From Octopus bimaculoides (taxonomy: Eukaryota): a stretch of 63,744 nt of DNA. The notes beneath the pieces are model-generated. The model saw only the letters and a list, made by a program, of their open reading frames with translations, was not told the DNA's origin and made no database searches. A program made the translations under genes and the position numbers. The stretch lies in the NCBI RefSeq assembly GCF_001194135.2, contig NC_068982.1, positions 185,586,066 to 185,649,809 on the forward strand, in the 5' to 3' direction. Shown here one piece after another: positions 5,560-58,650 of this stretch; position 1 is the stretch's first letter; each line of letters opens with the position of its first letter.

Positions 5560-5591
<32 letters not shown>

Positions 5592-5676
5592 GTATTAGTG
5601 ATAATTAACAAAAAAGAAGGTATGCAATTGTTGTAAGAGAAGTAAATCTCAATATCATTGATGCTGTTGTTAAAAT

Positions 5677-5748
5677 TCATGAAGCAAAACGTTTCATAGC
5701 TTCCTTGGTATGTTCAAACACTTTATCCACTGTGTTGTTAGAATCAAT
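5677..5748 (-). CDS. AK1-like: Terminal coding exon ([23 protein letters not shown]), 72 nt
   Basis: ttatcttttcag|ATTGATTCT...TCATGA; homologous to the AK C-terminal helix. Confidence 0.92.
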   Translation of the reverse strand: MDSNNTVDKVFEHTKEAMKRFAS

Positions 5749-5940
5749 CTGAAAAGATAAAGTGAAATAATCCAGTCATATATTCTCCCTATTTTTTTTT
5801 TATTATTTCTTACTTTACTTCTATCTACAATTCACTCTTTATTTCCATCTAGCTATCTGTCCTCCTTTTCTAGACAATAAAGTGTGAAGCATGCAGGAAT
5901 TACGACCATACACAATTGTACATACATACATATGTGTGTG

Positions 5941-5978
<38 letters not shown>

Positions 5979-8900
5979 AGGGTCACTCCTGTTTATTTTG
6001 AAGTGTGAGTGTTTGAAGGAGAGGATTTAAATCAGCATATATCCTGAAACCCAGTGTGGATTTCGGGCTGGGTAAGGCACAGTTGATGTGATTTTTGTCC
6101 TTCCACATGTTCACGAAAAAGCTTGTGAGCATAACACTGTGCAGTCTTTGTTGACTTGATCAAGGCCCTTGAAACAATGAATCATGAGGTGCTCTGGAAA
6201 ATTCTGTCAAAAGTTGGTTTTCCGGATAAAATGATAAGAGTAATAGTGTCTTTGCATGAGGGAACAATGGCAACAGTGATATCTAGTAGTCAATGGACAA
6301 AGGCATTTTCTGTTGCCACTAGATCCAAACAGGGCAGTGTTTTAACTCCTGTACTTTTTTCCATATTCTTTTTGGATAATGCTCCAACATGCTTTTGTAG
6401 AACGACCGTGCGAACCAAAGGAGAAATGGTGACGAATGGAAAACAGGCTCCCTTTTAAACGCGTCACACGGTCGACACAAAACTATATGATATATGTTAT
6501 AATACTATAACATAGAGAATTTGCATGTGGAATGCGAAGGAATGCTAGTAAGGAAAATGATATTGACTCAACCGATAAAAATGTATAACAGTAAGATTTA
6601 TTGGAGCATTAAACTGTATGTCTGTGTGTGAGTGAATGCGACATAATAAAACACAATATAAGACAGGCCGTCATGTAAACAAAAGAGTGTGTATACAAAT
6701 ACATGTATGTGAATGCAAGAGATACAAAGCGTAGAAAGAGTCTGTAATACAGGATAATAAGATACCAGTTCTGTTAAGGTACACAGTAGTTAGATTGTCT
6801 GTATATAAGAGGTTAAGGTTGCGGCAGAGCTAAGTCACTTTTCGTGCAGTTGAGGCTTCGATGCCGGGTTGGATTCTTGATACAGATGTTCTTCGCAGGT
6901 TGAGTTCTGGCNNNNNNNNNNNNNNNNNNNNNNNNNNNNNNNNNNNNNNNNNNNNNNNNNNNNNNNNNNNNNNNNNNNNNNNNNNNNNNNNNNNNNNNNN
7001 NNNNNNNNNNNNNNNNNNNNNNNNNNNNNNNNNNNNNNNNNNNNNNNNNNNNNNNNNNNNNGCGCGGATAATTTAGGCTATTTATAGGTACAAGGAGGCT
7101 CCAGAGAGCATCATAGAAACACTCTCTCGCGTGACCTTATTATTGGCTACGGTTGGTCGGTTTGCGTCCTGGCGCGAACGGCCTGGAGGCAAATGCCGCG
7201 AAAATAAAAGTCAGTCAGGTGATGACACAGAAAGGCAGGAAAGAGTTGTTCCCTGCTACGCTCGCATTTGTAAAATAAAAAACCATGAGAGAGGTGGTTT
7301 CACTACACTTTTAAGGATTACCAAGGAAGTTTAAAATTTCAGTTTCACACAGAAGGAAGTCTACTAAACCTAAAAAGGCAAAGACTATGGAAGAGATTCT
7401 ATGTGACTTTCTGTTTGCTGATGATTGAACTTTGATTTCTCATGCATTTGAGGGATTCAGAAAATAGTTGACAGGCATGCTGTGGTAGCTTGAGCATTTG
7501 AACTCTCTACCAGCATCAAGAAGACTGAAGTTTTATTCCAGCCAAAGCTAAGGACAGAACATACTCAAGTTTCAAATGTGATGATTGACAATAAGCTACT
7601 CAAATTGGTCAGGCATTTTCTTTGTTATTTGGATGATGATATTTCAAGAGTTGCAGTCCTTGGTAAAAGCCATCCAGTTTGTAAAAATGGATGACTCTTT
7701 GGAAGTATTGTAGGCCATGTTCTTTGCATGAACTACTGCAGCACATTTATGTGTAAACTACTCAGGGGATTTGGGATTATGAGATTTTGATGTAGAGGAG
7801 CATGTCTAAACAGAGAGTTTTAGTCACCTGTCTAACTACCTCTGATAAGTTATGAAGGAAATGCATATACTGCATGGAATAATTAGCATAGAATGGTTGA
7901 GGTTTTGACTAGTCAGCTGATTTGAAATGCCATGAGGTCTGAGAAGAGGGAAGATGTTGCATAGTATATAGGTGTATGATGGGTTGTCAAGAGAAGGAAC
8001 TAGTTAGATGACCCGATGGGATTGGAGATAGTGATGGTTTGATAGATTCTGCATATGGAAGTGAGAAAGAGAAAAACGCTTTGTGACAGGATAAAAGCTG
8101 CAGAAACATGCACCAGGCACTAAAAAATCCTCTAAATATTGACTGAAAGAGATAGAAACACTAGTTCTGAAAACAAGACTGGACAGTCACAGCTTGAATG
8201 CTGTTGATCACACATCTGTCTGATCAGTGCTGACCTGAAGTTAAATAATAGCACAACTCCTTAGACACACTACATTGAGTCACAAGGAGTATTTTATGAC
8301 ATGGTACCTGATCATTATTTTTTGCCAAAACATATGTACCTCATTGCAGAATCGTGTTCAGTATGCATGGAGTCTCATAAGCTAAACGCAAAAGGATAGA
8401 ATTGAATTTGAATTATGATTATTGTTTGTATTTGTGTGTGAGTGTGACTCTGCATGTGTGTGTGCATGCATGCGAGTGTGTGCGAGTGAATGTGTCACTA
8501 TTTGACTTGTAGTCAGTTTGTCTCATACCATGCAAGTGGTGATTCAGTCAGCAGATGAAATGTCACATATCTGATGAATAACATTTAACACCCTCTCATT
8601 TGATTTGTGCTGCTCACTACAGCAATGTCCTACTCTAACAGTTCTCTCTCTAGAATTACAAAGTGAGAACATCAACAGTGATACTTACATTAATAACTTT
8701 ATTTTGGTCTTGATAGTGATCTATAACAGGTTGGGTGATTTCATGAAAGGTCACAAGTCTCTTCATAATGGTTTCTTTATTGTCATCATCACGACCACTG
8801 GTCTTACCTCGGTCCAACAGACGTGCTACCAACACATCATCTGGAGCAGTGAAGTTAAGCACAGCAGCACACTCGGTAATCTAATAATGCAAAAGTTAAC

Positions 8901-11900
8901 AGAAAAGTGGGGAAAATGACACAAGTCAGAGAATGACAGAAACAGTACAAACAGACCAACACTTGGAATAATAAAGTAATAAACAAAATTAGCAGACCAA
9001 AGTAAATCGATATCACTATTTTATTCAATCAAAATGAATCAGGCTATCCTGTGTTGATAGCAGCATTACTGACTGCAGTCAGTATAAGGTCAATGATGGA
9101 CAATGGAATTCTTCCCCACCACTGCCCTTCTGAGTTCATTTAATCTGTCACAACAAACAACAAAGCAGTTGTTCACATTTACATGTTACACACACACACA
9201 CACACTCCCTCACTCATCGTCCACTTATGCCGCAAAGCTGAATGTGCTCTGATAAACAGATTTTCATTTATAGTTGTACTTAGTGAAACATTATGTCTTA
9301 TCCAGTGCCCTTGTTTATTGTGATCATGCAAAAGCAGCAACTAAATTATATCCACAACAACAAAATTCTCTCTAGAAACTGGATTAGATTTTGAGCAATT
9401 AAACTCTAAACCTAAGGTAGTAGCCAAAACAAATAAACTAATGGTGAACTAAGCCAATCTATAGTGAATGGCCATAAACACACGTCTTTATATAGCCACC
9501 ATTTCCATGAACTGAATGCCCCGTATATGAATAAAGAAGCTAACTCTGGCTTCTGTGAATAGGAAAAAGAAACAACCTTCTTTACCATTTAGATGTAGGC
9601 CATTATTACTAGATTTATTGAAAGGAATATTTGCAACTCCTACAATGGAGATGATAGACATCCCTGGTGTAGCATGTATAGGTATGAGCATGGCTGTGTG
9701 GTTAGAAGTTTATCTTAAAAACCACATGGTTCCAGGTTCAACCCAACTGCATGGAACCTTGTCAACCAAAACTTTGTGAGTGGATTTGATTGACAGAAAC
9801 TGAAAGAAACCTGTTGTGTGTGTGTGCGTGTGTATATATATTCATGTGTGAGTCTTTGCTTGTGTTTCTTTCCCACCAGTTTGATGACTGGTGTTGGTTT
9901 GTTTACATCCCCCATAACTTTGCACTTTGACAAAAAGGGCTGATAGAATAAGCATGTCGCTTCAGAAAATAAGTACTAAGGTTGATTTGTTCAACCAAAC
10001 CCTTAAAAGCAGTGGCCTAGCATGGTTGCAGTCCGTTGACTGAAACAAATAAAAGATAAAAGATATATGGAGATAGAATAACTTAACAAAACTTCTCTAT
10101 ATATGCTCAGTCACTCATTCATTAATCCATACAGAAAACTCATGTGGTACACATATGAAGCTCCACTTGTCTTAGAAACTGTCAATGTGAGGACAGCACA
10201 AAACAAACATGACATCAATTTCCATGACATTTGTGGCCACATTTTAGTGTCTTGAAGGTAATCAGACCTGAGGATTAGCTAAATGGGTTTTGTGTGGGTT
10301 ACAAGTTATGTAACACACTTTGTTTAGCTATGAAACATATGTAGTCCTTCTTTACCGTTTCCATTCCTTACATTCTTGAACTTTGATCCACATATCTGAC
10401 AATTTTTGTTGCTAAACCATGAGTTGTATAGAGAATGTTAATTTATTGAAATTTCTGTTGATTTCATTATGGGATGAAGTGTATAACATACGACGTTTAC
10501 TAAACTCTTTTTACTATACATTGTCCACTTTATCATATATTGTCATCTATAACTAGCACTACACCAGTTATGATGATGAGAGTTCCATTTGATGCGATCA
10601 ACGGAACAGCCTGCTCATGAAATTAACATGCAAGTGGGTGAGCACTCCACAGACATGTGTACCCTTAGCATAGTTCACTGGGAGATTTAGTGTGACACAG
10701 AATGTGACAAGGTTGGCCCTTTGAATTACAGGTACAACTAATTTTTGCTGGGTGAGTGAATTAGAGCAACATGACATAAAGTGTCTTGCTGAAGGACCCA
10801 ACATGCCACCTGGAATCAAACTCATAACCTTATGATCGTGAGCCGAATACCCTAACCACTAAGTCATGCACCTTCATTTGTCATCTATACGAGCTGTGTA
10901 CATGTTTGAAGCTTATTAACTTCCTATACCAGGATCTTTCAGATTGTACTACCCTTTGACTATATATTTGTGGATTGATCACACTACCAATGATTTAATG
11001 TGGAAAGAATGTCCACAATCTTCAAGCAATCTATTAAAACATGCTGGTAATCACTTCCATTTAGGACGAGATCATGAAAATTCTTTCTACATAAAGCATT
11101 GGTAACATTGTTAATCCATAAATAAAGAATATTTATTCACCAAATGCAGTGTTGAGCTCTCATTCTGATAGTATTGTAATTGTGTGTGTGTGTGTGGGCG
11201 TGCGTGCATGTATATTATATCTCACCTCATTCTCAAATTTCAAACCCTGCTGCAACTCCCGAGGGTAACCGTCAAGGAGGAAACATTTGGTGTAAGATGA
11301 CCTGCTGACCAGAGCTTCTCTAAGAAGCTGTAAAACCACTGTCTGTGATTAGAGAAAAATGGAATGAGGTTAAAGTGAGAGTGGATGACAGGGAGAGAAG
11401 GTCACATAAAAAGTGAATTGATGCAAGATGAAAATGCAATGAAAGTAGAAAAAAAAATGAGTGGATGTTTGTGAGAGTGGAGATTGAGTGTTACATGTAA
11501 CTCAGTCAACTGATAAGATCTTATACATATACTTGACATGTATAAAATTGTTTCCTGACTCGACATGTATAAAATTGTTTCCTAGCAAACAGATGAACTT
11601 ACCCATTTACCCATTTACTACAACATAAAACTCATTAATTATCTGTAATCAAAGAAAGATCTTAGAGCTGTTACCTGGTCTATACTTTTACCATTTCTAA
11701 GCATTGTTCATAATACTTAAATACACAACTACAGCAAAAGCTTAACTCGTCTGATATTGCAAACTTTACACAGAGCTTTTTTAAGAATAACATCTAAATT
11801 AGATATTTTTGTAAGAAACTCCAAACATATATCCAAATTTAGTGGACCCAAACATTCAATGATACTCTTTAATATTTCAACCTAACGACAAGTTAGGCCA

Positions 11901-14900
11901 AATAGTTAATCCTAACTCAAACACTATCTAAAAGCAAACATTAGCAATAACAGGTTATTGGAAATTAGGTTAGAGTCTATAACTAACTCCTGAAATTTTT
12001 TGGCCTCATCCTTTAGGTTTCATAACTTTCTTTGAAGAGTTTGATCTTTGCCTCAACATATCTCAGTTGAGTTTTTCTTGTTGTTACAAACTGACTTACA
12101 GAAGGCTCAGAAATAGTGATCAAAATACCCCCCCCCCCTCACCGCCACCAACACCACCAACTACACCCTTGCCACTAAACGCCACACAACACCACTAAAT
12201 AACTATGAATAACTATTGCCAAAATATGTTTGCCTGTCAAAGTGACGAGGACCATCTGCTCATACTTAGGGATGAGTGTATGACTTGTGCAACGACTTTG
12301 TGTAAAGTGAAGTAGAGTAGCACACCGTCACCCCCACTCTCTTGTCCATGACAATCTTCAATCCAGAAGCAAAACAGTATAAAGACAACTGGAGATGGAG
12401 ACAGACACAGTGGATGACAAAGATGTCTTATTGCATCCTGCTCTCTGCACACCACAATTTGTTGTTGCAGTCACCTTTCCCTCCACTTGAACCTTGAAGG
12501 TTTCTTCCACAGAATCATCAGCTAAATTCAGTCTCCACATGCATAGACAGGCAAGCCTTAATATGCTAATTAACCCAGAACTTGAACCTGACAAGTGCTA
12601 CTACTTAAGGTCAGAGCAGACCTGGGTACAATAGTGGCTAAGAGGTGGTTCCACACTTCTCGGAGCCCTGGAATTTTCAAACCAGGGCTCCACTATCTGA
12701 TGCAGTTTAAAGTCATACCCAGGACACTGTTATCACTACCAATAGTACTCTCACTACAGCTGGTGTTACCATTACTATTATTACTACCATCACCACTACT
12801 GCTATCTGCAACTACATCATCACTTCTATTACAAATAATATCATCATGGATTACTCTAACATTACTACCTTAGTTAGCCCGCCTTACTGTTACAGTCACC
12901 AAGACAACTATTTAAACTGTTCTCTCCACTGAAAGAATAGTTAATTAGTCAATAATATCAGCAATTATCCCATTAGGGCACAGGAGTGGCTGTGTGGTAA
13001 GTAGCTTGCTTATCAACCACGTGGTTCTAGGTTCAGTCCCACTGTGTGGCACCTTGGGCAAGTGTCTTCTACTATTGCCTCGGGCCGACCAAAGCCTTGT
13101 GAGTTCATTTGGTAGACGGAAACTGAAAGAAGCCCATCGTATACATGTATATATATATATATGTATGTGTGTTTGTGTGTCTGTTTTTGTGCCCCCACCA
13201 TCGCTTGACAACCGATGCTGGTGTGTTTATGTCTCCGTAACTTAGCAGTTCGGCAAAAGAGACCGATAGAATAAGTACTAGGCTTACAAAGAATAAGTCC
13301 TGGGGTCGATTTGTTCGACTAAAGGCAGTGCTCCAGCATGGCCGCAGTCAAATGACTGAAACAAGTAAAAGAGTAAAAGAGAGAGTATTCTACTTAGCCT
13401 ATTAGAGTCGACAAAGTAACCCCCTCCTTCTACACTCAGGAAACAGTAACAAGAACATGAAAAATAATGAAATATAACAGTTTTACCATTGGCACAAGTT
13501 CACCTTTCTGCATAGTCTCATTGAGTTCCTTGCCTCTAGCTGAGCCAGAAGCAACTTCTTCACGAAGCATGTCTCCAGATGACAGGTGACAGAAGCCATA
13601 ATGCTGTACCAGTTTGGCACACATGGTTCCTTTACCACTACCTGGACCACCTGGATAAATAATGAAGAATTAATTAGTAGAGGACATAATTTGTTGTTAG
13701 TGGGGAAAAAAAGAAAACATTGTGTGAACAACTACAAGCAGGTGCTGTTCTTTAGCCCAAAGTCAACCTAACCTTGATCCAAGATAGCTAGGATCAAAAA
13801 CATTTCAGCTGTGATCACTGTTTTTTCAGACAAAGTGTATTTAGATCTACATTACCCAATGTGAACTTCCATTTTTAAGTGGTTATGATGAAGGGAAATT
13901 TTGCTGTTATTTCTAGCAGATTGAATGACCATGTAAAGAGACTCTCATTGCCTCAACTACAAACTGTTATAAATAATGTTATAACACCCTCTTTATACTC
14001 TGCCAGGAAAACAGACTTACCTTATGTAATGGTGTGTTAGAAAAGCTGGATAAATAAATCCTCAGACAGTTTTTAGTGATGTAACAGACTTAAATGTACC
14101 AATTTTACTTGGCTTTACCACTTGTCATAATTAGCTTACCTGTTTTGCTATCTGAAATGCCTGATGAACTCAATACATTCCTAATTTCAAACTTCAAATT
14201 CTAACTTGGCACTCAGTGACTCACTTAATCCAGGTTTCACTACACACACCTATCTAGAGTATAGTGAAGTCATATTGGCACCTCATACTTTCTGACCAGC
14301 TAAATCTGGTAAGTTATTAGTTTTTTTAAATCTTTATTATAAGGAAAAGTCAGACTGCCATTAACTGAAATGGCCAAAATAGTTTGGCAAGTACAAGACT
14401 GTGGAAAGGTTAACTCTTTAGCTTTCAGATTACTCTATCAAATTTAATGCTTTTTGATTCACACTGTTTTGAAGTAATCATGCATTATCTGGTAGCTTTA
14501 AGATTTTGATGATGTGGCTGCTTAGAATGACATTTGGCAGTAGGTGTGAGAGGCTGAACATGAAAGAAGTAGAATATTTGGGCTGGATATGGCCAGTTTA
14601 AATACTAAAGGGTTCAAGTTGTAAAAAAAGGGTACATACCCACAACAAAGATGACTTTGCATTCATCCAAGCAAGGTTCTGGAAATGAAATGAAAAGCTG
14701 AATGTAGCAAAACTTATCCTTCTTAGATTTGCAATCCATCCCAATCTTATTCACCACACATTTGTTACAGATATTAACCTGGGTAAGTCAATGGGAAGGA
14801 TGCTAACAGCTACGACATTGATCTTCATTTGCTTTAAAGAATTTACAACATCAAAAGAAAAATTTGTTTTTATTAGATGTTTGGCTTAAGGGCATCAAAT

Positions 14901-16341
14901 AGTTAGGGATAATTTGGTATTAAATCATAACTAGGACTAATACAGTTAACTAGCCAATTAGTTGTAAGCATCACAGTATGATATAATTCAATGTACTGTG
15001 TCCATGATCAAGACACTTAACAGTGCAATCTACCTAACCAAAGCTAGGCACTGTGTGGTGTAGTTCACTATCCTCTGTCCTTAATTAAGGCACTTAACTA
15101 TCAACAGTTCACTTAAATGGAAGCAGACACCATGACCAGAATACGGTCATACAACATTTAGTTCTATATATATCTACACTCTGAATTTAAATTCACAGTT
15201 ATATTTCATCTTGAAATGAAGCTGAAGTAAATACTAGAAATATAGTGTGTTGGTGATTGTGTGGTGATACAGTGTGAAACAATGTAGTGTATTGATATAA
15301 AGAGATGCAGAGTGGGACTATTTAACGCAGTAGTGTAGAATGGAGCAATGATAGTGTAGTTGTAAGGAGCGAAAAATATAGTGTAGATATGCAGAATGGA
15401 ACTGTAAAGTGTCTTGTACAACAGAGTAGTGTTGGCGTATACAATGTATTGCAGAGGTGTAGCATGCAACACTCTAATGCAGTGGGGTAAAGTGATTTAG
15501 TTGTTGCTACTGTTTACATCCTGCTCAACACTAACTGGATATGTCAATGATCATAGGCTTCCACTATGACCACCCTATCTAATAGTATATCCAGGGGTGC
15601 ATTTCCTGATGTATCCTTCCTTTTTCAGATGGTAAGGCATAATATCAAGGAGAATCAAAACGTTAACAAAATTCAGTTAATGAAATAAGGTTACACGAGT
15701 TACCTCCCTGTTTAACACCGTTTTCTTTATAATAAATACATCAACTGGCGTGCTCAATTACGGAAAGATGTTTTTAACTACCCTTACCTTTCTCTATACC
15801 TCAATTTTAATATCTTCAAGAAGGACAAATATATACTCACTCAGTTTAGGGCAGCACTCCTTGAAGACCATCTCCACTTGGTAAAATACTTCCTCGGGGC
15901 TACCTTCAGCTTTAATCTGCAATACACAATAGTTATATAATAAATATTTCTCATGGTACATGTTTGTAGTAGGTTAGACCTGCTAAGGAAATTTATTGCT
16001 TAAGTTATTTCTTTCAGATCACTTAGATTCCTGTAACAGTAGTAAGAATCTATATTTAAATCAGATCTTACAAAACAGTTTCTTTCTTATTTGGTGTATC
16101 TGTTTCCACACTATTTTTCAGTTTAAATATCTTTTTTCATTCTTATTTTCTTCTCAACAGATCTCTCTTTTGACCCTGCTCTCATCCTTGCTTCTCCTCC
16201 TTTCTCTGCCTCTCTTTTTGATATGTGTGTCTATGTGTGTGTATTCATACAGAATGAGAATGCATTTGCCCTCAACGATGCATTAGTAACATGGAAAAGT
16301 TACCAATGTAGGGTTATTGAATGAGAAAAATGCAGAGAGAG

Positions 16342-16406
<65 letters not shown>

Positions 16407-17966
16407 CTTATGTATATCCAACTGAGAGACAAGCCCCTGAAATTGACAGTTATTTTACTTCATTAAACAGGCTTTCATGGGTTGGAAGGGTCATTCCCAG
16501 TCTGAGTCCATTCTTATTTTTGTTGTTGCCCCCATCTCTAGTTAAGCTGGGGACCGCATTCCACTCATAAATTCTACTTTAGGTATGATTTCTGCAGTTG
16601 GATGTCCTTAATACCAACCACTTACAGAGTGTACTAAGTGCATTTTATCATGGCACAAGTACTAGTAAACCCTTCAGATTTTTGCATGTACACTGTTTCA
16701 TCTCACTCACCATATTCTCTATATAATATTTAATCTTTAACACCTAAACTCTCTGTAAAATGTCTCATCTGCCACCAATTCTTTAAAAAGTGCATAAACA
16801 ACGTTGGACTATATAATCACTGCTTTACATCCATTTCTCTTCAACTAGTTGATCAATAAATAACCTAACAGCATTGTTTCCTCCCTTGTTTCGTATCATG
16901 ATATAAATTAAACTAAGGGGGTAACATCAATTTATAACTGAATTCTCTCCCCTGTTAATATTTTTTTCTGTCTTTTTTTTTTTTGTGTCCTGCGTATTTT
17001 TCATATTTCCTTTCTAGTCCTCAATGTTCAACTTTTGATAATAACATTCTGAAGTCCATTAACGTTTCAAGACCTTCTCAAAATCGTCATCAGAAAGAAA
17101 TGACGATAGTGGTGCGTTGTTGGCAACAGACGATTATAGGACTAACGTTATAACTGAAAAACAAAAAAATCCTTACCAGTAGATTTAAAATTGCTGTATT
17201 TATATGTTAATTTTTCGTTTGTAATTTGCAATTGTAGTAGATCATATTTCGTGGTGGCTGTAATGCTGGTGGATCTCAAAACCCCATTTCTATTTACATA
17301 CAAAAATGTAGCCTCAGAACATTTTAGAATATCTTGCCATGTTCTTATTTAACCAAAGATATCTTAACTGCAGTTCAGGCAATGCTTTACAGTGGATTCT
17401 TAGAGGATATTCTCTTATTTCTTCCTCTTGTGTATATATTTGGCAAACTCACATTCTTAGAATCTCTTTTATACACAGGAACAATATATACCACAAAGAC
17501 ACACTTGTATAATTATCAATATATTCGTATTTCTGTTCTTTTGTACTGAACTTTCCTTCAACTTACTATAACATTTTTCTGATAGAAAAAAGAATATTTA
17601 GAATGAAAATGGAGATTTAAAAAGATAACAGTATCTTATTTTTCATCATGATTATTCTCTTCTGTTTTACATTCTGTAACTCCTAATTCTATTTGATGAC
17701 TCATTGATAATTTCCTAACATCCAATTCTAGATTATCTTTGATGACCCAGCAAAAGAACTCGCATTTTCACCTGGAACAAGACACATTCATTTATCATAA
17801 TAATTAGTGAAATAACTTTTGAACTGGAATCAAAGCAACTTTTCTGTTTCATAATGACACACTATGAACAGATATATATAGATATAATATCTCTGTCTTA
17901 TTAACTCTCTAAATGAGAGTTGGAATTATATTACTATAGAAGCCCAACAAGGACACACATATTCCA

Positions 17967-18000
<34 letters not shown>

Positions 18001-19796
18001 GGAGGCCTGATGAGGACAAAACACAATAAAACACACCAGTGCCTTGTGACCTTGGCAAACTGTGCTTCTGTTATTTTCATCACTGACACAACAAATGCAT
18101 ATTGACTATCTTCTTTTTTTCTTTAAGGTCAGGTTCCAACTCAGGTCACAGCAACAAAGTCCCCACACCAAACTTCTTGGTCCGACATCACTGGATAGGT
18201 TCTTGGCCCGTGTCTGTGATTGAGTTGTTGATATAAGTGTGACAATATTTTCCTCTATTTATAACATTATGAAGTGGGTTCCACTAGACTAATTCATGGA
18301 TTTCAGCAAAGTGTTTGACAGCATCCATTATGACAAAATGTTGAAGATCCTTCGAACATATGGCATTCCAGAAGAAATAGTTCTTGCCATTGCAAAGACC
18401 TACAAGAAAACCAGAGCTTGTGGGTTGTCATCTGATGGAGAAATGGAATACTTTCAAATACTAGTTCGGGTGCTACAAGGAGACACACTTGCATCTTACC
18501 TGTTTGCAATTGTATTGGATTATGCAATGTGGCAGGCTATAGACAACAGTGATGAAGATCTTGGTATTGCCATTGATCAGCAAAGATTGTGGAGAGTACC
18601 AGCAGTAACGATCACAGACCTGGACTTGGTAGATAATATAGCACTCATATCTAATGAAATAGATCAAGCATAAAAGCTGTTCAGCAAAGTAGAAACATCA
18701 GCTGCCAAAATTGGACTGCAAATGTCAAGAAAATTGAATACATGTCTTTCAACCAATCGTGTGATGCTGAACACTTTGCTTTGAGTGGCTCCAAATTGAA
18801 TGTTGTTGAAAACTTAAGTGGTTGGGTGAGCAGTTTGGAAGCAGGCATCAAGATCAAGAAGGAACAAGCATGGACAGCCTGTCACAGATTAAAGAAGGTC
18901 TGGAAATCCAAACTACTTGGATGAATCAAAATTGACTATCTGACTGACAATCAGTGTTTCTGACAATGTCCCCTAGGTGTCCAACAGATTATTCACTTCA
19001 AATGCGATAAAAGCAACAAATTAAAAAGCTGTCAGAGAACTTACAGTTTGTAATTTGTTGTTCATGGCATAGTATTCAAGTACTGGAGTGGTATGTTCAT
19101 GGAATGTCAGCAACCGTTTATTGATTGTCTCTTCATTATCATCGACTCGACCACTGGTCTTGGCACGGTCAAGTAACCGAGTTTTCATTGTCTCATCGGA
19201 TACATCAAAATTCAGCACAAATTTGCAGGAAGCAATCTGGATGTGGAAAAAAAAAACAAATGAAAATATAATATGTGGTTAGGGTGTCTGCAATGTCAGT
19301 TTGATACAGTTAGTGGGTAGATTAGTGAAGATTAGTATGGTAAAGGTTGGAACATTCTGGGTGCTAAGTAGATCACATATCGAAGTGTGAGAGGATTTTG
19401 GAGAAATTTACTGGAGAAATATGTATTAGTTTTGTATGTGATGAAGATGACACTGATGATGAATGCAGTCTTGTAGTGCACCTGAACATTGAATGCAATA
19501 AGTTAATAATAATAGTAATGATGGACAATGTATGAGTGTTCAGCTTCTACTGAATGACCAGCACAAATGATTTGTTTATAGAGTTCAAATGTATGTGTTG
19601 TACATTAGCTTACTCTCTCCATCAAACTGCCTGAACAGGTGCATGGCATATAATATGAGATGAAGTGTTTTGTTCAAGAACACAGTGATCCAGGAATTGA
19701 AACCATGATCTCACGATTGTAAGTGGAACACCCTAATTACTGAGCCATGCATCCTCACAATAGTAGTATTAATGATGATAATAATAATAATAATAA

Positions 19797-19864
<68 letters not shown>

Positions 19865-22409
19865 ATAATAATAATAATAATGTTTTAAAAGGATTGATGT
19901 AACTCTTCACAAAGGTAAATAGACAATATGAAGAGTGTGATGTGATTGCAGTACATATTTTATTGGTTGAAAGATATTTCGACAGTTAGCCTGTCTTTGT
20001 CAAGTTCAAAATAAAAAGTGATAAAAATTGAAAATTATAGAAATTCAAATCTAAAATATGAATGAGAGCAACTAGTGTCCCCATGTTGATGGAATGACAT
20101 CACCAGTTGTCAAACTTGAAGTTTACAACTGGCAAAAAGAAAAGGAAAAAGAAGAAGAATATTTAATCAAATAGTTTTGCGTAAATATGATGAAATTCTC
20201 CTGTCATTTCATTCATTCCTCCAGGGCGTGATAACCCACAAACATATTTCTCCTCATGCATTTTGAGTACTGAAAGTGTAGCAAATTCAGAATATTTTCT
20301 GAGAATATGCACTTTCAAGACTTTTTTAAAATTGCAGCCATTTGATGCAAAATGTTCGGCAAGTTCTGTCGAACTACTGCTATTGCACCTGACGTCATAT
20401 CTGTGCCCATGGAATTTTTTGTTTAATTGTTCTGTAGTACAACCAACATAAATCAAGTTGTGTTTTGTGCATTCTGCTGCATACACCAAATGGGAATCTT
20501 TACAGGTCCTCCCTTCTGTGTAAATTATAACATTTCTGTTAAGATTCCTGATGGAATTCACTTGATTCATTTTGTTGCTGGGCTTACCTCTCTTGTGGTT
20601 GTTTTTCAAGGTACAGCATGCAGAAACTCCAATGTTAGTTTTCTTGGAGTCAGAAGTAGAGGTTAATAGTTCTCTTATAATTTTATTTTGTCTAAAGGCT
20701 ACAATAGGTGGCTGAAGAAATTTTTGTTTGAAATCAGCTTACGGCCATATTATGTTGAGAGCACCAGTTCTCGTCCGATCACTAAAGTTAAGCAATGCCG
20801 AGCTTAGTGAGTACTTAGATGGGTGACAGCTTGGGAAACCTAGGTGCTGTAAGCATCACACACTATGGTGTTAGGAAGGGCATCCAGCCGTAGAAACTCT
20901 GCCAGATCAGATTGGAGTCTGGTGTAGCCATCTGGTTCGCCAGTCCCCAGTCAAATCGTCCAACCCATGCTAGCATGGAAAGTGGACGTTAAATGATGAT
21001 GATGATGATGAACATGCTGGTAACTCTCATATAACACTTTTGAAATGACAGTGAAATTTTAGCACCAATTAATCACTAAAGGAATTCTATCACATATTGT
21101 ACTATATTTGTTAAAATTATGAGTGAAAGTTTGACTTTCTTTGCTAATCTTAACTTTGTTATTTCCTTTAATCATGATTTTCTGTAACTGTGTTTGACAT
21201 AATGGTGTACAAAAGCATTTACCTGTTTCCAGTAATCCCCTATGTCAGTACAAATCCATTTTATCCTCAAAAATTGGACTCTCAGGGGCCATACGAACCC
21301 TGGTTGAGAACCACTGCTTTATTTAATATCAAGGTCTGTCAAAGAGGATCCTAGTTCACACAGTTTCAAGGCATAATATATAATATGTAAACACATGCAG
21401 TAAATATATAATCTTGTATATCTAGGTGTGCCTTTTAAATGTTAGGAGTTGCACACTGTTTGTGGTCTTATTAGATTCTATAACACTGATAGTTTCATTG
21501 GGGTATGTGTTGGTTTGTGAGTTCACTGGCAGATCAAGCATAGGGGTTAACTTACCTCAGCTTCAAAACGCTTTCCCTGATCAAGTTCCCTTGGGTATCC
21601 ATCAATGAGGAATCCTCGGGAATTGGCAGCTCGGCTGAGCATGGCTTCCTTGATAAGTTCAAGTACAGTATCCTGAATAAGAAATAATGAGTAAAATATC
21701 AGTATGTGATATCAAATATACCAGAGGCGATGCTCAAATGAAGAAAAATGCAGAACTATACATAAACAATTATCTTAAGTTCTATAATGTGACAATATGC
21801 TTTTCTTGATTATCTATAATTTCAATTGAAAAACTACTCTTGAATTTACCACTATGTACTTTCAAAGTTAGATGCTACAACTGAGGAAAGCACTTCATGA
21901 AGGCTAACACTCAAGTGAATAAGAGTACATAAGAAATTTAAATGATTGTAAATGATTGGAAAGGAAATGATAAAGATAAATTAGATTCAAGAAGAGACTA
22001 ACAGAAGGAAACCAAAATACAGAATTAGGAATTGTGGATGTTTGTGTGTTGGAAATATTAGAGCTCTGTGGCTATTTGGATTAATACATTTTAAAGTAAC
22101 AACAAAATTGTAAGAAACAAACTCACCATAGGCACAAGCTTTCCTGTTGCCATGATGGCAGTGAGTTCTTTACCCCTGGCAGACCCAGAGGCCACTTCTT
22201 CACGGAGAAGGTCTCCGGATGAGAGATGGGTGAATCCATATTTGGATACAATTTTAGCACACTGGGTTCCTTTGCCACAGCCAGGTCCCCCTTTATTAAA
22301 AAAACGTTGGATAGAATTTATAATTAAATAATGTAGTAGAGATTATACAAACATAGATATATACATACACACATATATATATAAATCATCATTGGCTAGA
22401 ACTCGCTCA

Positions 22410-22455
<46 letters not shown>

Positions 22456-24272
22456 TTGGAAAAGGATGTGTGGCGTTCGATCATATAATGATATAAATAA
22501 TATATAAATATATGCATATATCCATACATATATGTAATACCTACATCTATATGTATACATACATGCATATATGGGTACAGGACCTCAAAAAAACGTCAAA
22601 CACAATGAGAAAAGGAAACATAGAAAACGAACATTTTTCGAACAACGAAAAAAAACAGAGAAACGAGACATGCAACATAAAGAGTATACCCCTTCGTCAG
22701 TTGTCCCTGTTTCATCTACTCCGCGTTTCGAAGGCAACGCGGGGTAGATGAAACAGGGACAACTGACGAAGGGGTATACTCTTTATGTTGCATGTCTTAT
22801 TTCTGTGTTTCTTTTTTTTCGTTGTTCGAAAAATGTTCGTTTTCTATGTTTTTGTTTCTCATTGTGTTTGACGTTTTTTTGATGTCCTGCTCTAGATGTC
22901 AGTAAAGCTTTTGGTCCATGTCTGGCATGCAAATCTCCTATCAAAACATGCTATCTATCACCCATCCATCTCTTATCTTTTGAATTAGTACCTTCTTATC
23001 TGATCACTCTCAATCAACTCTGGTTTTCATCAGAGTTTGGTCTTGTCTATTATTCTCTTCCTCCTATACTTCAATGATCTTCTTACCTCCACATCCAACA
23101 ATGCCAGCTATCTTATGCAGAAAACACAACCCTACGTACCTCTCTAACTTTCCCTAACCATGCATCATCTACATGCCAACCTTGCACTAATTCAATAAAC
23201 AAAGACCAGAGAAAATTCTTTCATGGGTGCCACGCCAACCTTGTTTCTTTTAACAGAAAAACTAACAAACCAAAAGCATTACTTATATGAAGAAAACATT
23301 GCCACATCACACGGCCATTAAATATAACTGGCTAGAGTTCTTCAAGTTACTCCAAATGCTGGGCCTCTCTATCACTGAGGATCTCTCCAGGAAAATACAC
23401 ATCCTTAACATAGTCAAGACTGCATCTCAAAGATTGATTCTCTCTTCAGAGCCAGAAAATATTTCAGCCCTCAACAGCTACTGACACTTTATAAGGCCCA
23501 TATATAGATATCACATGGCTTCCTTTGGTCAGAGCTGACCATGAGTAGTATCCTTGCTGTTTTCAACTCAGCTGAAGCAGTGTCTCCACTGGCTAAACAG
23601 ACCTATTCATGTGTGACAGTCTCTGTCACATGGAGCACATGTGTATATGGTTTTAGGTCTGTTGGAGTTACTGTTCTCCTTTTGCCAGGCTGCTGCTGTG
23701 TCCATTAACCTCTTTTTCTCTGACTTGAGGTGTTCATTCAGGGAGCTCCTCCATGTGAACACATGCTACATACATACATGCATATGTTTTACACACACCA
23801 GAAACCTATGTAGAAATATTGTGTACTTACCGATCACAAAGATGACAAAAACATTCTCCAAGGATGGAACTGAAACAAAATGTTACAGAGTGAATTTTTT
23901 AGGTTGGTAGTGCTTGTGAGAGTGGTATGTTATACCAATGTGTACTGAAGTACATTGAGGTATCTGTCTATGTACATGTGCATGTATATATGCATGTGTG
24001 TGCATGTATGAAATTTTTTATGTGACTGTGCAAGAAATAATTTGTTAAAGCTTGTGTATGTGTGTATGGGGTAGAATTTCTGTGACATACATGCATTCAT
24101 ATATGTGGTATACATAATCAGACATGTACATACCTACAATGCATGTATACATGCATTTTAGATTTTGTATATATCTATATATTTTATTGATTTATGAATT
24201 CACTTACCTTTATAGATATGATGGAAAAGAATATGTGCATGTATAAATTATGTACATACATACATACATACA

Positions 24273-33300: not shown

Positions 33301-36300
33301 TATGCACATTAATTGTAACTAACCCCAAATATCCCCCAGTTTATCAATGTAACACCAAGTTACTAAAGTTTTCACAGTGTCATTGTAAGTGTTCCCATGC
33401 TCAGTAGGGAGTCAGTATCCTTATCCTGTCAACAGTTTCTATGTTAAGTACCACTGTCATCATTCTGACAGTTTAACTCTCATGTTAAGCAAACGGCCAG
33501 TGTTTCCATACTGTCAGTTGTTCCCATATTAAGTGGATAATGAATGTCTCCATTGTGTCAATGTAAATGTACCTATGTTAGCCAGACAGCCAGTGCCTCC
33601 ACTTAGGCAACCATTCCAATTTTAAGTAGACAGTCATATCCCTATACTCTCAATGTAACTGTCTTCACATTAAATAGACAGCTAGAATCTCCATGCTGCT
33701 AATACAAATAATTCTATGTTACAGAGACTACCAGTATACCCGTACTGTCAATGTAACTGTCGCCTTGCTAAGTAGACAGTTAGAGTCTCCTTAGTGTCAA
33801 CTCTTTCCAGTTAGTGATCCCATGTGGCTGATGTAACTGCCTCTATGTTAATCAGACAACTAGTTTCCCCACAGTGTCAGTGTAACTGCCTCTATATTCA
33901 GTAGACAGTCAGTGTTATAAAAACATAAATCCTCACACTTACCTTTTGCAACACTCTGGAATAAATGAGAGAAAAGAGAATGCAATTAGCAATGCAACAT
34001 TAGACTGCACTTGCAAATATGCAACAGTTAATGGTATGTGTGCAGTGTTTAAGCCTGTAGAAAGTGCACAGCATGTATGTGTGTGCGTGCGCGCAGTATG
34101 TGAGTCTGTAGAAAGTGCAGAACATATATGTGTGCAGCTTGTGTTGAAATTAAAGCAGTGCAATGACTGGTGGTTGTTGGTGGTGATAATGGTGGTTGAT
34201 GATGATAACGATTGTGATAGTAGCAATGATAGTGATGATGATGGTGGTCATTGCTAAAACAAATAGTGGTAATGATGACTGTAATGATGACTGTAATGAT
34301 GGATGCAGATGTGCTGAAGAGTTGATGGTTTATCAGTTCATTGACTATTTAAGCAGTGAAGAATGTCTTTGTGTGTAACAACCTAAGAAATTGAAACTAG
34401 AACCATATGGCAGACTCCCTATAACAAAGAGACCATTTCACTTCCTTTAAAAAAATTGATAAGTAATCAATTAGTTTCTTATTCTCCCACCATTATCCTC
34501 TATTCTAGGTCACTGATTTTGTGAATTTTGACTTTCTTGAAATACTTCCCTCTATCCAACACTTTTATCTTTTCTTTTATTTGTTTCAGTCACTATACTG
34601 TGGCCATGCGGAGGCACTGCCTTGAAGAATTTTAGTTGAATGAATTGACCCCAGTACTTTTTTTAGGCCCGGTACTTATTTTATTGGTCTCTTTTGCCAA
34701 ACTGCTAAGTTACAGGGACGTAAACACACCAACATCAGTTGTCAAACAGTGGTGGTGGACAAACACAGTCACAAAGACATACACACATGCATGAGTGTGT
34801 GTATGACAAACTTCTTTAAGTTTCTGTGTACCAAATTCATTCACAACGGTTTGGTCAGCCCAAGGCTATAGCAGAAAACTCTTGCCCAAAGTGCCATGTA
34901 GTGGGATTAAACCCAGAACCATGTGGTTAGGAAGCAAACTTCTTAACGCACAGCCATGCCTGCATCTATAGTTGACCATTTTCTTGTGTTTTCCATATGC
35001 TACTATCAAATCACCCAACTCTACTATCTATAGTCATATGAACTACCTCTACTCTGGATGCTGTCCACTACAATCTTATAACTCATTTCTACTATGGTTA
35101 CAGTCCACCAGCATCTGTTCTCTGCAATATAGCAATTTCCTTGGTCATTTGTTTAATTGTAGCATGGGTTGGACACAAAATCTATGATAATGATGTTGGG
35201 ATGGTTTTCTTCAATTTCTCTACCAGTTATAATTCAGAATAATGTGACTGATGTCTTCAATGAATTCTTCTATCATTTGTTGTCATGTCTGTCTTGCAGT
35301 AATGATTTATATATTGGCTAGTGAATATTTAATATTCACTCAGTCATGCCTGTTGTTTGTTGCAAAATGCCTAACTGTGAAGAGCGGTTCAGAGTGAGAC
35401 AAGTCTGTGGCCTCATTTTAATTTTTCAGTGACAGCAACTTAACATTCCTTTTATTATCCATATCAAGGGAAGTGAATAAATATTTTTCCATTTCCTCCA
35501 TAAAACAAATCTCATTTTTTATGCTTAATTATTATTTATTCATTTATGCTTAATTAGAATCATCTACTATTATGCTTAATTACTATTAAATTGCTATTAT
35601 AGCATGCCATGCAAAATGTTTAGTGGAATTTCATTTATCATTACATTCTGAATTCAAATTACATCAAGGTTAACTTTGCCTTTCATCCTTTTGGGGTCAA
35701 TAAAATAAGTGCCAGTTGAGTACTGGGGTCAATGTAATCGACTTAACCGCATCCCTCAAAAATGCTGGCCTTGTGCCAAAATTTGAAACCAAATTACTAT
35801 CATTACAAGTGGCATTTGGCAGAATTGTAGGAATATTGTAGAAATCATCATCATCATCATATGTAGGAATAAAGGCGGCGAGCTGGCAGAAACGTTAGCA
35901 CGCCGGGCAAAATGTTTAGCGGTATTTCGTCTGCCGTTACGTTCTGAGTTCAAATTCTGCCGGGGTCGACTTTGCCTTTCATCCTTTTGGGGTCGATAAA
36001 TTAAATACAGTTATGCACTGGAGTCGATGTAATCGACTTAATCCCTTTGTCTGTCCTTGTTTGTCCCCTCTATGTCTAGCCCCTTGTGGACAATAAAGAA
36101 ATAAGAATTGTAGGAATATTGGACAAAATGCTTTGTAATAATTAACTACAGTTCTTTGCATTCTAAATTCAAATCCCACAGAAGCCTTCTTTGCCTTTCA
36201 TTCTTCAGGATCAATGAATAAATCAGTGGTCAAATTGGGGTTGATATAACTAACTGTTCCCCTACCCACAATTTTATGGCCTTGTGCTTTTATAAGAAAC

Positions 36301-57706: not shown

Positions 57707-58025
57707 TCTCGACTGAAGTTATTACACTTGTTGATGTTACAGTTGTTGTGATATTGCTATCTTCTACTCTTCACGTTTTTTTTTTCTCCTTCTCTCTATC
57801 CTTTGAGATAGATACGTGGGCGTACAGGTTGTTGTGTGTATGTATGTATCTATGTCTTAGTACGTGTATATATGTGTGTGCACGCGTCTGTCTGTGTCGA
57901 CCTTCTGGGATGCTGACAATCGAATACCGATGGAACTCCAAACTGACACTGTTGAAATACGAGAGACAACTAACCAGTCCTTACCCTTCTCTTTCTTTTT
58001 CCTTCTTCACCTTTTTCTTCTATCT

Positions 58026-58060
<35 letters not shown>

Positions 58061-58650
58061 TTCTTTATACCTGTTTCCTCCTCCTCCTCCTCCTCCTCCT
58101 CCCACTACTGCACTACTATTTTTCACGTCTTTTTCTTTTATGTAGAAGAAGAGGGCGAGAAAGAGAGAGAAGCAGGAAAAGAAAGACAAATAAAGAGAGA
58201 GAAAGAGATCAAGAGTAGAAGTTAAGCGAGGGAGAAAAAAAAATTTATAAACAAAGAGAAAAAGGACAAGGAAAATAAATGTTCATAAAGGTAATAAGAG
58301 AGGGACGGAGAGCAAGAGTTAGAAGAAACATGGGAGGGGAATAGAGCAGAAAGAAGTAAAAATATGAAAAAGAAAGAGAACGAAAAAAAGCAACAGAGAG
58401 GAAAAATGAGAAGTTAATAGGAGAGAGAGGAAGAGAAAGAGAGGCGCGGGGAAGGGCAGCTGATGTAATGTGAAGTGACAAGTAGGGAGAAGAGAGAGAG
58501 AGAGAGAGAGTCGGAGAAGGAAAGAAAATCAGGAAATCCCTCATTACGACTGTGGAAGGGGTGGGCAGAGGAGACACAAGAGAGATGTTACCTATTAATG
58601 TGTTTATCTTTACACATACATAAAGGAAGGCGGAAACTTTTTCTTGCTGC
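57400..58650 (-). promoter_or_regulatory. Probable promoter/5'UTR region of the AK gene
   Basis: CpG-retaining, with GA-rich tracts; contains the ATGCCA|gtaagt donor (57701) and a second strong donor AGG|gtaagg near 57985. Confidence 0.4.
57701..57706 (-). CDS. AK1-like: Candidate first coding exon end (ATG CCA = Met-Pro, phase 0), preceded by 5'UTR
   Basis: Minus strand reads gtcgagaATGCCA|gtaagtaaat: consensus donor and A at -3. It joins the 13-nt microexon in frame. It lies in the CpG-retaining part of the window. A possible upstream acceptor (tctctcgtatttcaacag) sits near 57949. Confidence 0.45.

Follow-up and report, generated by a model that had tools for sequence, protein, structure and literature searches.

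The gene is located on the minus strand of the analysed window (63,744 nt of the Octopus bimaculoides contig NC_068982.1), which is 100% identical to the GCA_001194135.2 chromosome record CM046602.1, and it corresponds to the locus LOC106872597. It has 12 coding exons distributed over 52 kb, at positions 5677–57706. In a tblastn search with a human AK1 query sequence, two sets of three core exons were recognized on the minus strand with E values from 1e-10 to 1e-24. Inspection of the sequence confirmed what an earlier note on this DNA had described, namely two adenylate kinase (AK) modules of AK1 type with exons of 39, 164, 117, and 192 nt each, equal phases, and GT-AG borders throughout. The first module closes with a 76-nt exon and the second with a 69-nt exon followed by the stop codon. 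The spliced translation is identical to RefSeq XP_014775119.1 (396 aa), and a RefSeq annotation of the gene is already present for three Octopus species. The features are as follows.

57701..57984, minus strand: exon 1, 5'UTR and the first two codons Met-Pro (57706..57701); sequence ...gagaATGCCAgtaagt
33943..33955, minus strand: exon 2, 13-nt microexon AGTGTTGCAAAAG, coding for Ser-Val-Ala-Lys plus 1 nt
23831..23869, minus strand: exon 3, 39 nt, strand 1 of domain 1, internal exon
22127..22290, minus strand: exon 4, 164 nt, P-loop GGPGCGKGT and NMP-binding region of domain 1
21556..21672, minus strand: exon 5, 117 nt, core of domain 1 with DGYPR
19045..19236, minus strand: exon 6, 192 nt, LID of domain 1
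15841..15916, minus strand: exon 7, 76 nt, end of domain 1 (strand 5, C-terminal helix) and beginning of the linker
14640..14678, minus strand: exon 8, 39 nt, remaining linker and strand 1 of domain 2
13487..13650, minus strand: exon 9, 164 nt, P-loop GGPGSGKGT and NMP region of domain 2, with the signature residue Cys236
11226..11342, minus strand: exon 10, 117 nt, core of domain 2, with the signature residue Cys290
8689..8880, minus strand: exon 11, 192 nt, LID of domain 2
5566..5748, minus strand: exon 12, last 23 codons and TGA (5748..5677), about 110 nt of 3'UTR
6912..7061, no strand: assembly gap of 150 N in the last intron, the same gap being found in the chromosome-level record

The gene is longer than the 5677–23869 given in the earlier note, where it was thought to begin with the 39-nt exon. 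That exon (23869..23831) is preceded by a phase 1 acceptor and contains no ATG in frame, and a regex search of the window revealed no contiguous first exon coding for MPSVAK. The start is split into a 6-nt coding piece (ATGCCA, 57706..57701) and the 13-nt microexon (33955..33943); since it lies upstream at 57706 and the 39-nt exon is internal, the gene extends over the whole 5677–57706. RNA-seq depth over exon 1 is about 40–50 per orientation at 57701–57984; reads start at 57984, and the transcript start is at about 57984–58020. The contigs from runs X5, X10, and X13 end in exon 1, where the loose end at 57701 continues with the microexon and exon 3. The microexon is bordered as ccag|AGTGTTGCAAAAG|gtaagt, was seen in 32 raw reads (in their loose ends) and between exons 3 and 1 in contigs, and accounts for the leftover of exactly 51 nt (38 + 13) in the X5 contig. 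At exon 3 the RNA depth is limited to the exon, and the sequence of exon 6 is present in 18 public runs.

The exon between the two modules is indeed 76 nt long, as noted before, but it is not primarily a joining exon: it codes mainly for the C-terminal part of domain 1 and is homologous to the last exon of the gene, so that each module consists of five exons. The linker that joins the domains head to tail is about 11 residues long instead of the presumed 15 or so. In the main isoform only 7 residues precede domain 1, in agreement with the expected lack of an N-terminal extension.

Both domains are carried on one spliced mRNA. Transcript contigs from seven runs span the modules colinearly, among them those of X5 (1508 nt), X10 (1180 nt), X13 (897 nt), X14 (1616 nt), X9 (1574 nt), and X1 (1265 nt). 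The joint 14678|15841, for which the earlier note had asked for RNA-seq reads, is crossed in run X24 by 57 raw reads with 34 start positions, and also by contigs of X14, X9, and X1. In the same run, 54 raw reads cover the joint 13648|14638 and 35 cover 21671|22126, the latter being found in contigs from three runs as well; in 36 reads the loose end at 15916 carries the final part of exon 6. Intron depth in X24 is about zero apart from repeat-derived peaks. The X5 and X10 contigs join 8689 to 5748 and extend about 34 nt past 5600, and the entire interval 5749–8688, gap included, is omitted from transcripts. As the contigs pass directly from 8689 to 5748, neither the frame nor the exon order is affected by the gap; in the orthologue of the clam Mactra the 192-nt exon is likewise followed directly by the 69-nt last exon. 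The scaffold is rich in gaps, with one in the locus itself, and the introns are large, so two adjoining single-domain genes or a gap-related assembly artefact could in principle be misread as one gene. This is hardly conceivable given the reads and contigs across the module boundary, where no pile-up of transcript starts or ends was found in the RNA-seq reads, and given the transcripts that bridge the gap-bearing intron. Moreover, no stop codon occurs in exon 7, whose phase 1 end is compatible with exon 8, and the fused layout is found also in orthologues of other species.

A second first exon is expressed. It encodes the Cys-rich N-terminus MDMFCKKCCYCFRSGKK, and the length of the N-terminus is thus 7 or 22 residues, depending on the isoform. 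The microexon is common to both forms; in the X1 contig the sequence ahead of it reads …FRSGKK and corresponds to the older model XP_014775118.1. Neither the window nor a searched 72 kb of the chromosome record contained the alternative exon (MDMFCKK…), which is located beyond these 72 kb or in a gap. A CCYCF match at 56314 was considered as this exon and rejected as a chance match. In vertebrates, AK1-beta is a myristoylated membrane-bound isoform of AK1 that arises from an alternative first exon (PMC2680645). The octopus gene resembles it in that an alternative first exon gives a different, here Cys-rich, N-terminus, and by analogy the product would probably be an acylated, membrane-bound form. 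It differs from AK1-beta in having no N-terminal Met-Gly, and any lipidation would therefore be S-acylation; acylation itself is a guess made from the composition of the N-terminus.

The protein matched Pfam ADK (PF00406) with 337.9 bits (cut-off 26.8) in two stretches, one per domain, in line with membership of the short-type AK1/AK5/UMP-CMPK group. The P-loops are GGPGCGKGT in domain 1 (Lys26) and GGPGSGKGT in domain 2 (Lys222). In human AK1 numbering, both domains have Arg44, Arg97 within DGYPR, Gln101, and a short LID with Arg128, Arg132, Arg138, and Arg149 together with Asp140 and Asp141. The AK1 catalytic set claimed for both domains is thus complete in each: at 19 of the 21 AK1 positions checked, both domains keep the AK1 residue, every catalytic residue included, and the two differences concern Thr39 (Ser) and Gln65 (Lys/Glu). 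The AlphaFold model (pLDDT 84.5, pTM 0.76) predicts an AK1-like three-layer fold for each domain, and it was matched in Foldseek to 3UMF, 1Z83, 3ADK, and 2BWJ, which include structures of AK1 and of Schistosoma AK, with target TM scores of 0.86–0.91. Judged from these residues and the model, each domain would independently catalyse ATP + AMP = 2 ADP, and the protein, with its number of catalytic sites doubled, would function as a cytosolic double myokinase in the buffering of adenine nucleotides.

Alternatively, only one domain of the polypeptide could be a working kinase and the other a regulatory or nucleotide-sensing module. The terminal domain has a conserved signature of its own, which includes Cys236 and Cys290, two cysteines absent from non-terminal domains, and RefSeq predicts a 331-residue isoform without the P-loop of domain 1. 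This reading is nevertheless improbable, as all the named catalytic residues are kept in both domains and as the two are similarly constrained between Octopus species: the O. bimaculoides and O. vulgaris/sinensis proteins (96% identical) differ by only 16 substitutions, none of them at catalytic residues. All evidence considered, LOC106872597 is a two-domain AK1-like kinase encoded on one mRNA, and its doubling is old and shared with other molluscs; we give this reading a probability of about 0.85.

The earlier hand count of identities in the core exons (41/54, 21/39, and 36/64, about 62%) was nearly exact; a recount gave 42/55, 21/39, and 36/64 (63% overall), and the 14-residue peptide said to be common to both domains is present at residues 49 and 245. 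Over whole domains, the identity is 109/196 (56%). Compared with human AK1, domain 1 has 56% and domain 2 has 52% identity; the two octopus domains are thus no more alike than domain 1 and human AK1.

Homologues with two or three domains were found in Aplysia, Haliotis, Sinanodonta, Tegillarca, Physella, Mactra, Mytilus, Liolophura, Argonauta, and others. In neighbour-joining trees of single domains (192 columns; bootstrap of deeper nodes below 25%), a clade of molluscan terminal domains including octopus domain 2 had 68% bootstrap, while monophyly of cephalopod domains 1 and 2 was found in 1.3% of bootstraps; in such a tree, which the earlier note had proposed as a check, the octopus domains group by position and not by species. 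In a quartet test, 481 of 500 bootstraps gave a shared duplication and 19 of 500 a cephalopod-only one. Five diagnostic columns (32, 84, 86, 130, and 187) hold Cys/Thr/Cys/Gly/Met in terminal and Thr/Ser/Gly/Ala/Phe in non-terminal domains. Octopus domain 2 has all five terminal states and domain 1 all five non-terminal ones; five cephalopod sequences all agree in four of the columns, and four of the five do so in the fifth. Identities follow the same pattern, with 59.3% to terminal vs. 54.4% to non-terminal domains for octopus domain 2, and 59.9% vs. 65.2%, respectively, for domain 1.

Gene conversion between domains is clearly present in some lineages and can blur domain histories. Domains 1 and 2 of Lineus are sisters at 99%, and those of Sinanodonta, Tegillarca, and Haliotis pair by species.

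The exon plan of the octopus gene is 39/164/117/192/76/39/164/117/192/69, and that of the Mactra gene is 33/164/117/192/73/42/164/117/192/69, which is the same 10-exon two-module layout; the Sinanodonta gene has three such modules. The Aplysia locus, half of which consists of gaps, was left out of the exon mapping. The independent cephalopod-specific duplication put forward in the earlier note is contradicted by the quartets, the diagnostic columns, and the Mactra exon plan. Such an event, in which the exon module of a single-domain AK1 gene would have been duplicated recently, in cephalopods only and independently of other lineages, would explain why the modules are equal in exon sizes and phases and have long identical peptides in common, and why cephalopod proteins have two domains where those of many other molluscs have three. 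Yet vertebrate AK1 and all homologues examined have these same exon sizes and phases, which are therefore uninformative on timing, and the identity of the two domains only equals that of domain 1 to human AK1. Five convergent changes (T to C, S to T, G to C, A to G, and F to M) would be needed to arrive at the terminal-domain states of other molluscs, domains 1 and 2 of cephalopods are almost never monophyletic in the bootstraps and quartets, and the whole two-module plan is shared with Mactra, inter-module exons included. A recent origin is accordingly very improbable. The comparisons indicate an old doubling instead, with octopus domain 2 corresponding to the distinct C-terminal domain, and domain 1 to the non-terminal domain(s), of the two- and three-domain AK1-like kinases of gastropods, bivalves, and a chiton; by the sequences compared, a distinct terminal domain was fixed before the sampled classes of chitons, gastropods, bivalves, and cephalopods diverged.

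The earlier note had also suggested that the gene is not an orthologue of AK5, and this is in line with our results. Vertebrate AK5 (PDB 2BWJ) has two short-type AK domains per chain, as does the octopus protein, but it also has an N-terminal part of about 130–150 residues with a DPY30-like motif and a strongly divergent domain 1, both absent from the octopus protein, and its linker is about 40–50 residues long vs. about 11 in octopus. If the octopus gene were nevertheless an AK5 orthologue (domain 1 to domain 1 and domain 2 to domain 2), the N-terminal docking domain would have been lost. In favour of such orthology, apart from the two domains in one chain, the O. vulgaris protein is named 'adenylate kinase isoenzyme 5-like', and the AK5-type layout of a DPY30-like N-terminus and two AK domains is old, being found in vertebrates, rotifers, Rozella, and Corallochytrium. 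Vertebrate domain 1 is on a very long branch that possibly hides orthology, and one bivalve-like transcript (P0026) has half of an AK5-domain-1-like domain ahead of two AK1-like domains. In a database search, this N-terminal piece of P0026 was matched by only 12 short unnamed fragments.

Domain-by-domain orthology to AK5 is not favoured by the sequences. The quartet (cephD1,vertD1|cephD2,vertD2) was obtained in 58 of 500 bootstraps vs. 426 of 500 for (cephD1,cephD2|vertD1,vertD2), and both octopus domains are far nearer to AK1 and AK5 domain 2 (55% for domain 1 and 50% for domain 2) than to vertebrate domain 1 (34% and 30%, respectively). The short octopus N-terminus of either isoform has no AK5-type extension with a DPY30/RIIa-like motif. 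No DPY30-like exon, divergent AK exon, or third AK module was found in the 72 kb around the octopus gene, which hold only the two known modules, and the 10 kb upstream of the gene in Mactra contain no DPY30-like or AK5-domain-1-like exon. Because deep nodes of the tree are weak, AK5 orthology is kept as an unlikely reading rather than firmly excluded.

The closest known relatives of the octopus enzyme are the molluscan multi-domain AK1-like kinases, predicted proteins with 58–78% identity over 96–100% of its length. They include Aplysia 'adenylate kinase 8' (593 aa, three domains), a Sinanodonta homologue of 594 aa, Mactra 'adenylate kinase isoenzyme 1' (409 aa, two domains), Argonauta 'adenylate kinase-like' (398 aa), and 'adenylate kinase isoform X1' of Octopus sinensis. 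The exon modules, the terminal-domain signature, and the short inter-domain linker are common to these proteins and the octopus one, while cephalopods have two domains vs. three in gastropods and some bivalves. The cephalopod N-terminus reads MPSVAK… or MPDVAN… and is without the acylation-type MGNxC start of many bivalve homologues. Vertebrate AK1 (PDB 1Z83, 2C95, and 3ADK) has the same catalytic residues, short LID, and fold as the octopus domains, and the same intron positions and phases (36/164/117/192/66 in Rhineura), but it is a single domain of 194 residues. Unlike the octopus protein, the long AK1 isoform of non-mammalian vertebrates has a DPY30-like part and a divergent AK domain in front. 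A high-molecular-weight flagellar AK of sea urchin is described as having three catalytic domains (2007, cited in PMC2680645); by that description it resembles the octopus protein in joining several AK domains in one invertebrate polypeptide and differs in their number, as only two modules are present in the octopus window and its flanks.

The gene is already annotated, and its doubling is common to snails, clams, and chitons as well; it is thus an unremarkable representative of an ancient gene family, and the finding has little significance beyond annotation. It illustrates that a 'high' similarity between repeated domains can mislead in a slowly evolving family, in which the octopus AK halves differ from each other as much as from human AK1. 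In literature searches, no characterised multi-domain adenylate kinase of octopus or any mollusc was found.

A broader proposal, which we regard as doubtful, is that the tandem gene is the main or only cytosolic AK1-type gene of molluscs, with a cysteine switch in its terminal domain and sorting by its first exons. An obligate double or triple kinase might have replaced the single-domain myokinase in molluscs. Since the molluscan ancestor, the conserved pair Cys236/Cys290 may have given the terminal domain a specialised role; judged from the known AK1 fold, the two residues presumably lie on the neighbouring strands 2 and 3 and could act as a redox switch. The choice of first exon may direct the enzyme to either cytosol or membrane. 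In the literature searched, neither a tandem kinase replacing AK1, nor a Cys-pair switch, nor first-exon sorting is described for any mollusc. As a by-product, the analysis gives a clearer picture of a widespread and uncharacterised invertebrate family of AK1 type with two or three active-looking domains, whose N-terminal variants suggest membrane targeting and which may be of interest for energy buffering in molluscan muscle, nerve, or sperm.

With human AK1 as the tblastn query, the window showed two ordered sets of three strong matches on the minus strand, within gene LOC106872597, and nothing comparable elsewhere in the window. Ten exons were read at their borders, with AG/GT at every intron and identical phases in both modules, which bears out the two modules of equal exon sizes described in the earlier note. 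The first 39-nt exon cannot be the start, as it is preceded by a phase-1 acceptor (…ttgtttcag/TT CCA…) and has no in-frame ATG. Protein search and cluster look-up recovered XP_014775119.1 (O. bimaculoides, 396 aa), which begins with MPSVAKV and is identical to the window translation from Pro8 on. The window is a 100% match to chromosome CM046602.1 (GCA_001194135.2), gaps included, and exact spliced mapping gave 12 coding exons for all 396 residues. The coding sequence starts at 57706, and the gene covers 52 kb rather than the 18 kb assumed previously. Its coding microexon is flanked by introns of ~24 kb and ~10 kb.

Exons and other features of the two-domain adenylate kinase (AK) gene (exons 1 and 2 by spliced mapping, the microexon also by RNA reads; all other exons by border reading)
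57706..57701, minus strand, exon 1, coding end ATGCCA
33955..33943, minus strand, exon 2, 13-nt coding microexon AGTGTTGCAAAAG
23869..23831, minus strand, 39-nt exon, module 1
22290..22127, minus strand, 164-nt exon, module 1
21672..21556, minus strand, 117-nt exon, module 1
19236..19045, minus strand, 192-nt exon, module 1
15916..15841, minus strand, 76-nt exon, end of module 1
14678..14640, minus strand, 39-nt exon, module 2
13650..13487, minus strand, 164-nt exon, module 2
11342..11226, minus strand, 117-nt exon, module 2
8880..8689, minus strand, 192-nt exon, module 2
5748..5677, minus strand, last exon, 69 nt plus TGA
6912-7061, assembly gap within the intron between exons 8880..8689 and 5748..5677
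18296-18673 (plus strand) and 20163-20609 (minus strand), intronic ORFs resembling transposon remnants, one an RVT_1 fragment (23.8 bits) and the other GIY-YIG-like (18.8 bits), both under the Pfam cut-offs

The 76-nt exon, previously taken as a joiner of two four-exon domains, is homologous to the last exon and supplies domain 1 with its strand 5 and C-terminal helix; each module thus has five exons. The linker proper in the predicted model is ~11 residues, from helix 184-198 to strand 210-215.

Both modules are transcribed on one mRNA. The joint 14678/15841 across the module boundary, named in the earlier note as a check, was found in 57 raw RNA-seq reads with 34 start points (run X24), and the joints 13648/14638 and 21671/22126 in 54 (X24) and 35 reads, respectively. 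Depth in the introns spanned by the first two of these joints is about zero except for one repeat-derived peak (~14570-14614), with no pile-up of read ends (X24). Transcript contigs colinear on the exons were obtained from runs X5 (1508 nt), X10 (1180 nt), X13 (897 nt), X14 (1616 nt), X9 (1574 nt), and X1 (1265 nt), and gaps in contig numbering equal the sizes of exons outside the examined stretches (309 nt = 192+76+39+2; 51 nt = 38+13). The first exon is covered by RNA at ~40-50 per orientation from 57701 to ~57984, where reads begin. The X5 and X10 contigs join 8689 directly to 5748 with record numbering unbroken, so order, orientation, and frame hold across the assembly gap, which conceals no exon of the expressed mRNA. 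The clam orthologue also has a 192-nt exon followed directly by a 69-nt last exon. The chromosome-level record has the identical gap.

Short repeats, intronic or UTR-flanking (5930-5978, 13000-13400, 20825-21079, and 58025-58064), gave thousands of partial matches to RNA reads and contigs that derive from other transcripts; such foreign reads account for very high local "depth" and swamped joint tables. RNA differs from the genome at 5691 (G>A, 16/30 reads), which would turn Arg392 into Cys, at 8827 (T>C, 21/40 reads and the X5 contig; synonymous A>G in mRNA), and at 57819 in the 5'UTR (G>T, 87/87 reads and all contigs). Either a SNP or A-to-I editing could account for the difference at 8827.

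Both domains have the features of AK1. Pfam ADK matches twice (337.9 bits). In alignment with human AK1, both domains have the P-loop Lys (octopus Lys26 and Lys222) and, in human AK1 numbering, equivalents of Arg44, Asp93-Gly-Tyr-Pro-Arg97, Gln101, Arg128, Arg132, Arg138, Asp140, Asp141, and Arg149, in agreement with the catalytic set recognized earlier in each. The 14-residue peptide reported as common to both halves is present in each, and the hand-counted core-exon identities were right (42/55, 21/39, and 36/64, or 63%). Over whole domains, the N-terminal domain (D1) and the C-terminal domain (D2) are 56% identical (109/196). Inter-domain similarity had been called high, but in this slowly evolving family it is not, as D1 is 56% identical to human AK1 too. 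Among solved sequences, the nearest are Schistosoma AK 3UMF, whose best stretch falls on domain 2, and AK1 structures, whose best stretches fall on domain 1; AK5 2BWJ has a lower score. An AlphaFold model computed from 13 two-domain homologues (mean pLDDT 84.5, pTM 0.76) has two AK-like alpha/beta units, and in Foldseek this predicted model matched AK1-type structures (target TM 0.86-0.91). Of the 16 substitutions between O. bimaculoides and O. vulgaris/sinensis, domain 1 carries 11 and domain 2 carries 5, and no catalytic position is affected. We infer from these features that the octopus domains are enzymatically active.

Contrary to the earlier proposal, the duplication is not restricted to cephalopods. 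Proteins of ~593-614 residues with three AK1-like domains are present in the gastropods and bivalves Aplysia, Haliotis, Physella, Bradybaena, Batillaria, Sinanodonta, and Tegillarca, and two-domain proteins of ~400 residues in Argonauta, Mactra, Mytilus, and the nemertean Lineus; the homologue list also has multi-domain forms from nematodes, rotifers, and others. In a neighbour-joining tree of 98 domains cut by profile from 47 proteins (300 bootstraps), cephalopod D2 clustered with the terminal (last) domain of all other molluscs, including the chiton Liolophura, with 68% support, and D1 was placed among their non-terminal domains; a clade of cephalopod D1 and D2 occurred in 1.3% of replicates. 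Mean domain identities are consistent with this grouping. In molluscs other than cephalopods, terminal and non-terminal domains are told apart by five alignment columns (Cys/Thr, Thr/Ser, Cys/Gly, Gly/Ala, and Met/Phe), and octopus D2 has all five terminal and D1 all five non-terminal states. The Mactra gene has exons of 33/164/117/192/73/42/164/117/192/69 nt, and Sinanodonta has three such modules. A cephalopod-only origin was rejected on these grounds and by the four-group quartet test (shared old split 481/500, cephalopod-specific split 19/500). The exon plan itself cannot date the duplication, because vertebrate AK1 has it too (3x/164/117/192/6x; Rhineura 36/164/117/192/66), which supports the label "AK1 exon module".

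The two domains of Lineus longissimus share 75% identity and group as sisters with 99% bootstrap support; exons are fused in its second module. Domains 1 and 2 of Sinanodonta, Tegillarca, and Haliotis likewise group within each species. Such patterns suggest gene conversion, or else a non-terminal module that was re-duplicated repeatedly.

Two terminal-domain Cys are present in every mollusc sampled, where non-terminal domains have Thr and Gly. In octopus, these are Cys236 (exon 13650..13487) and Cys290 (exon 11342..11226), at positions of human AK1 Thr35 and Gly89, which by the known AK1 fold lie on adjacent strands 2 and 3. Given that neighbourhood, they may be a structural or redox pair.

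Three parts recur in vertebrate AK5-like/long AK1, rotifer, Rozella, and Corallochytrium proteins: a DPY30-like motif at the N-terminus, an AK domain that in the vertebrate ones is strongly divergent, and a second domain of AK1-like type. The octopus protein has no such N-terminus, as stated earlier, and neither a DPY30-like nor a divergent AK exon was found in 72 kb at its locus. Octopus D1 and D2 are 55% and 50% identical to vertebrate domain 2/AK1 but only 34% and 30% to vertebrate domain 1, and quartets favoured independent duplications (426/500) over AK5 orthology (58/500). The earlier view that the gene is not an AK5 orthologue is thus moderately supported; given weak deep nodes in the tree and the long branch of vertebrate domain 1, an AK5-type origin keeps a slight probability. 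Non-mammalian vertebrate "AK1 isoform X1" proteins (P0091-P0120; 550-590 residues) carry canonical AK1 as their second domain, behind a divergent AK domain and a DPY30-like N-terminus, so AK1 and AK5 have one common two-domain layout. At the Rhineura floridana AK1 locus (L004), the long isoform has 15 exons, with a ~20-kb intron preceding the AK1 part. In the transcript-derived, bivalve-like protein P0026 (495 aa), two AK1-like domains are preceded by half a module resembling AK5 domain 1, namely its C-terminal half (…LDADRDMDSMFYDIS…). The 10 kb upstream of the Mactra gene contain no such exons, and a database search with this piece returned short unnamed fragments only.

Upstream of exon 3, loose transcript ends consist of the microexon and …GAGAATGCCA (X24, 32 reads; X14; X9). 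The X1 contig has the microexon and …TTTCGCTCAGGTAAAAAG, coding for …FRSGKK (via 23831-23871), and agrees with XP_014775118.1, an older, withdrawn RefSeq model of 411 aa beginning MDMFCKKCCYCFRSGKK-SVAKV; a second first exon is therefore expressed. This exon (MDMFCKKCCYCFRSGKK) was not found in the window or in 72 kb of the chromosome record, and it lies either upstream of window position 63744 or inside a gap. RefSeq isoform X2 (P0123, P0121; 331 aa), a prediction, starts at Met66 without the domain-1 P-loop. MGNxC starts are common among homologues, in bivalves and elsewhere, and some homologues begin with Cys-rich peptides. AK1-beta is the myristoylated form of AK1 (PMC2680645). The octopus enzyme likewise has an alternative N-terminus, and by this analogy one variant would be membrane-bound.

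The literature search turned up no paper on multi-domain adenylate kinases of molluscs, so the octopus enzyme is uncharacterised. It represents nothing new in kind, as annotations of the gene already exist for three Octopus species and the family is widespread; tandem AKs are an established theme. The best-supported reading is a double myokinase, in which two autonomous AK1-type sites per chain would each interconvert ATP + AMP and 2 ADP, and the choice of first exon would set the localisation of the enzyme.
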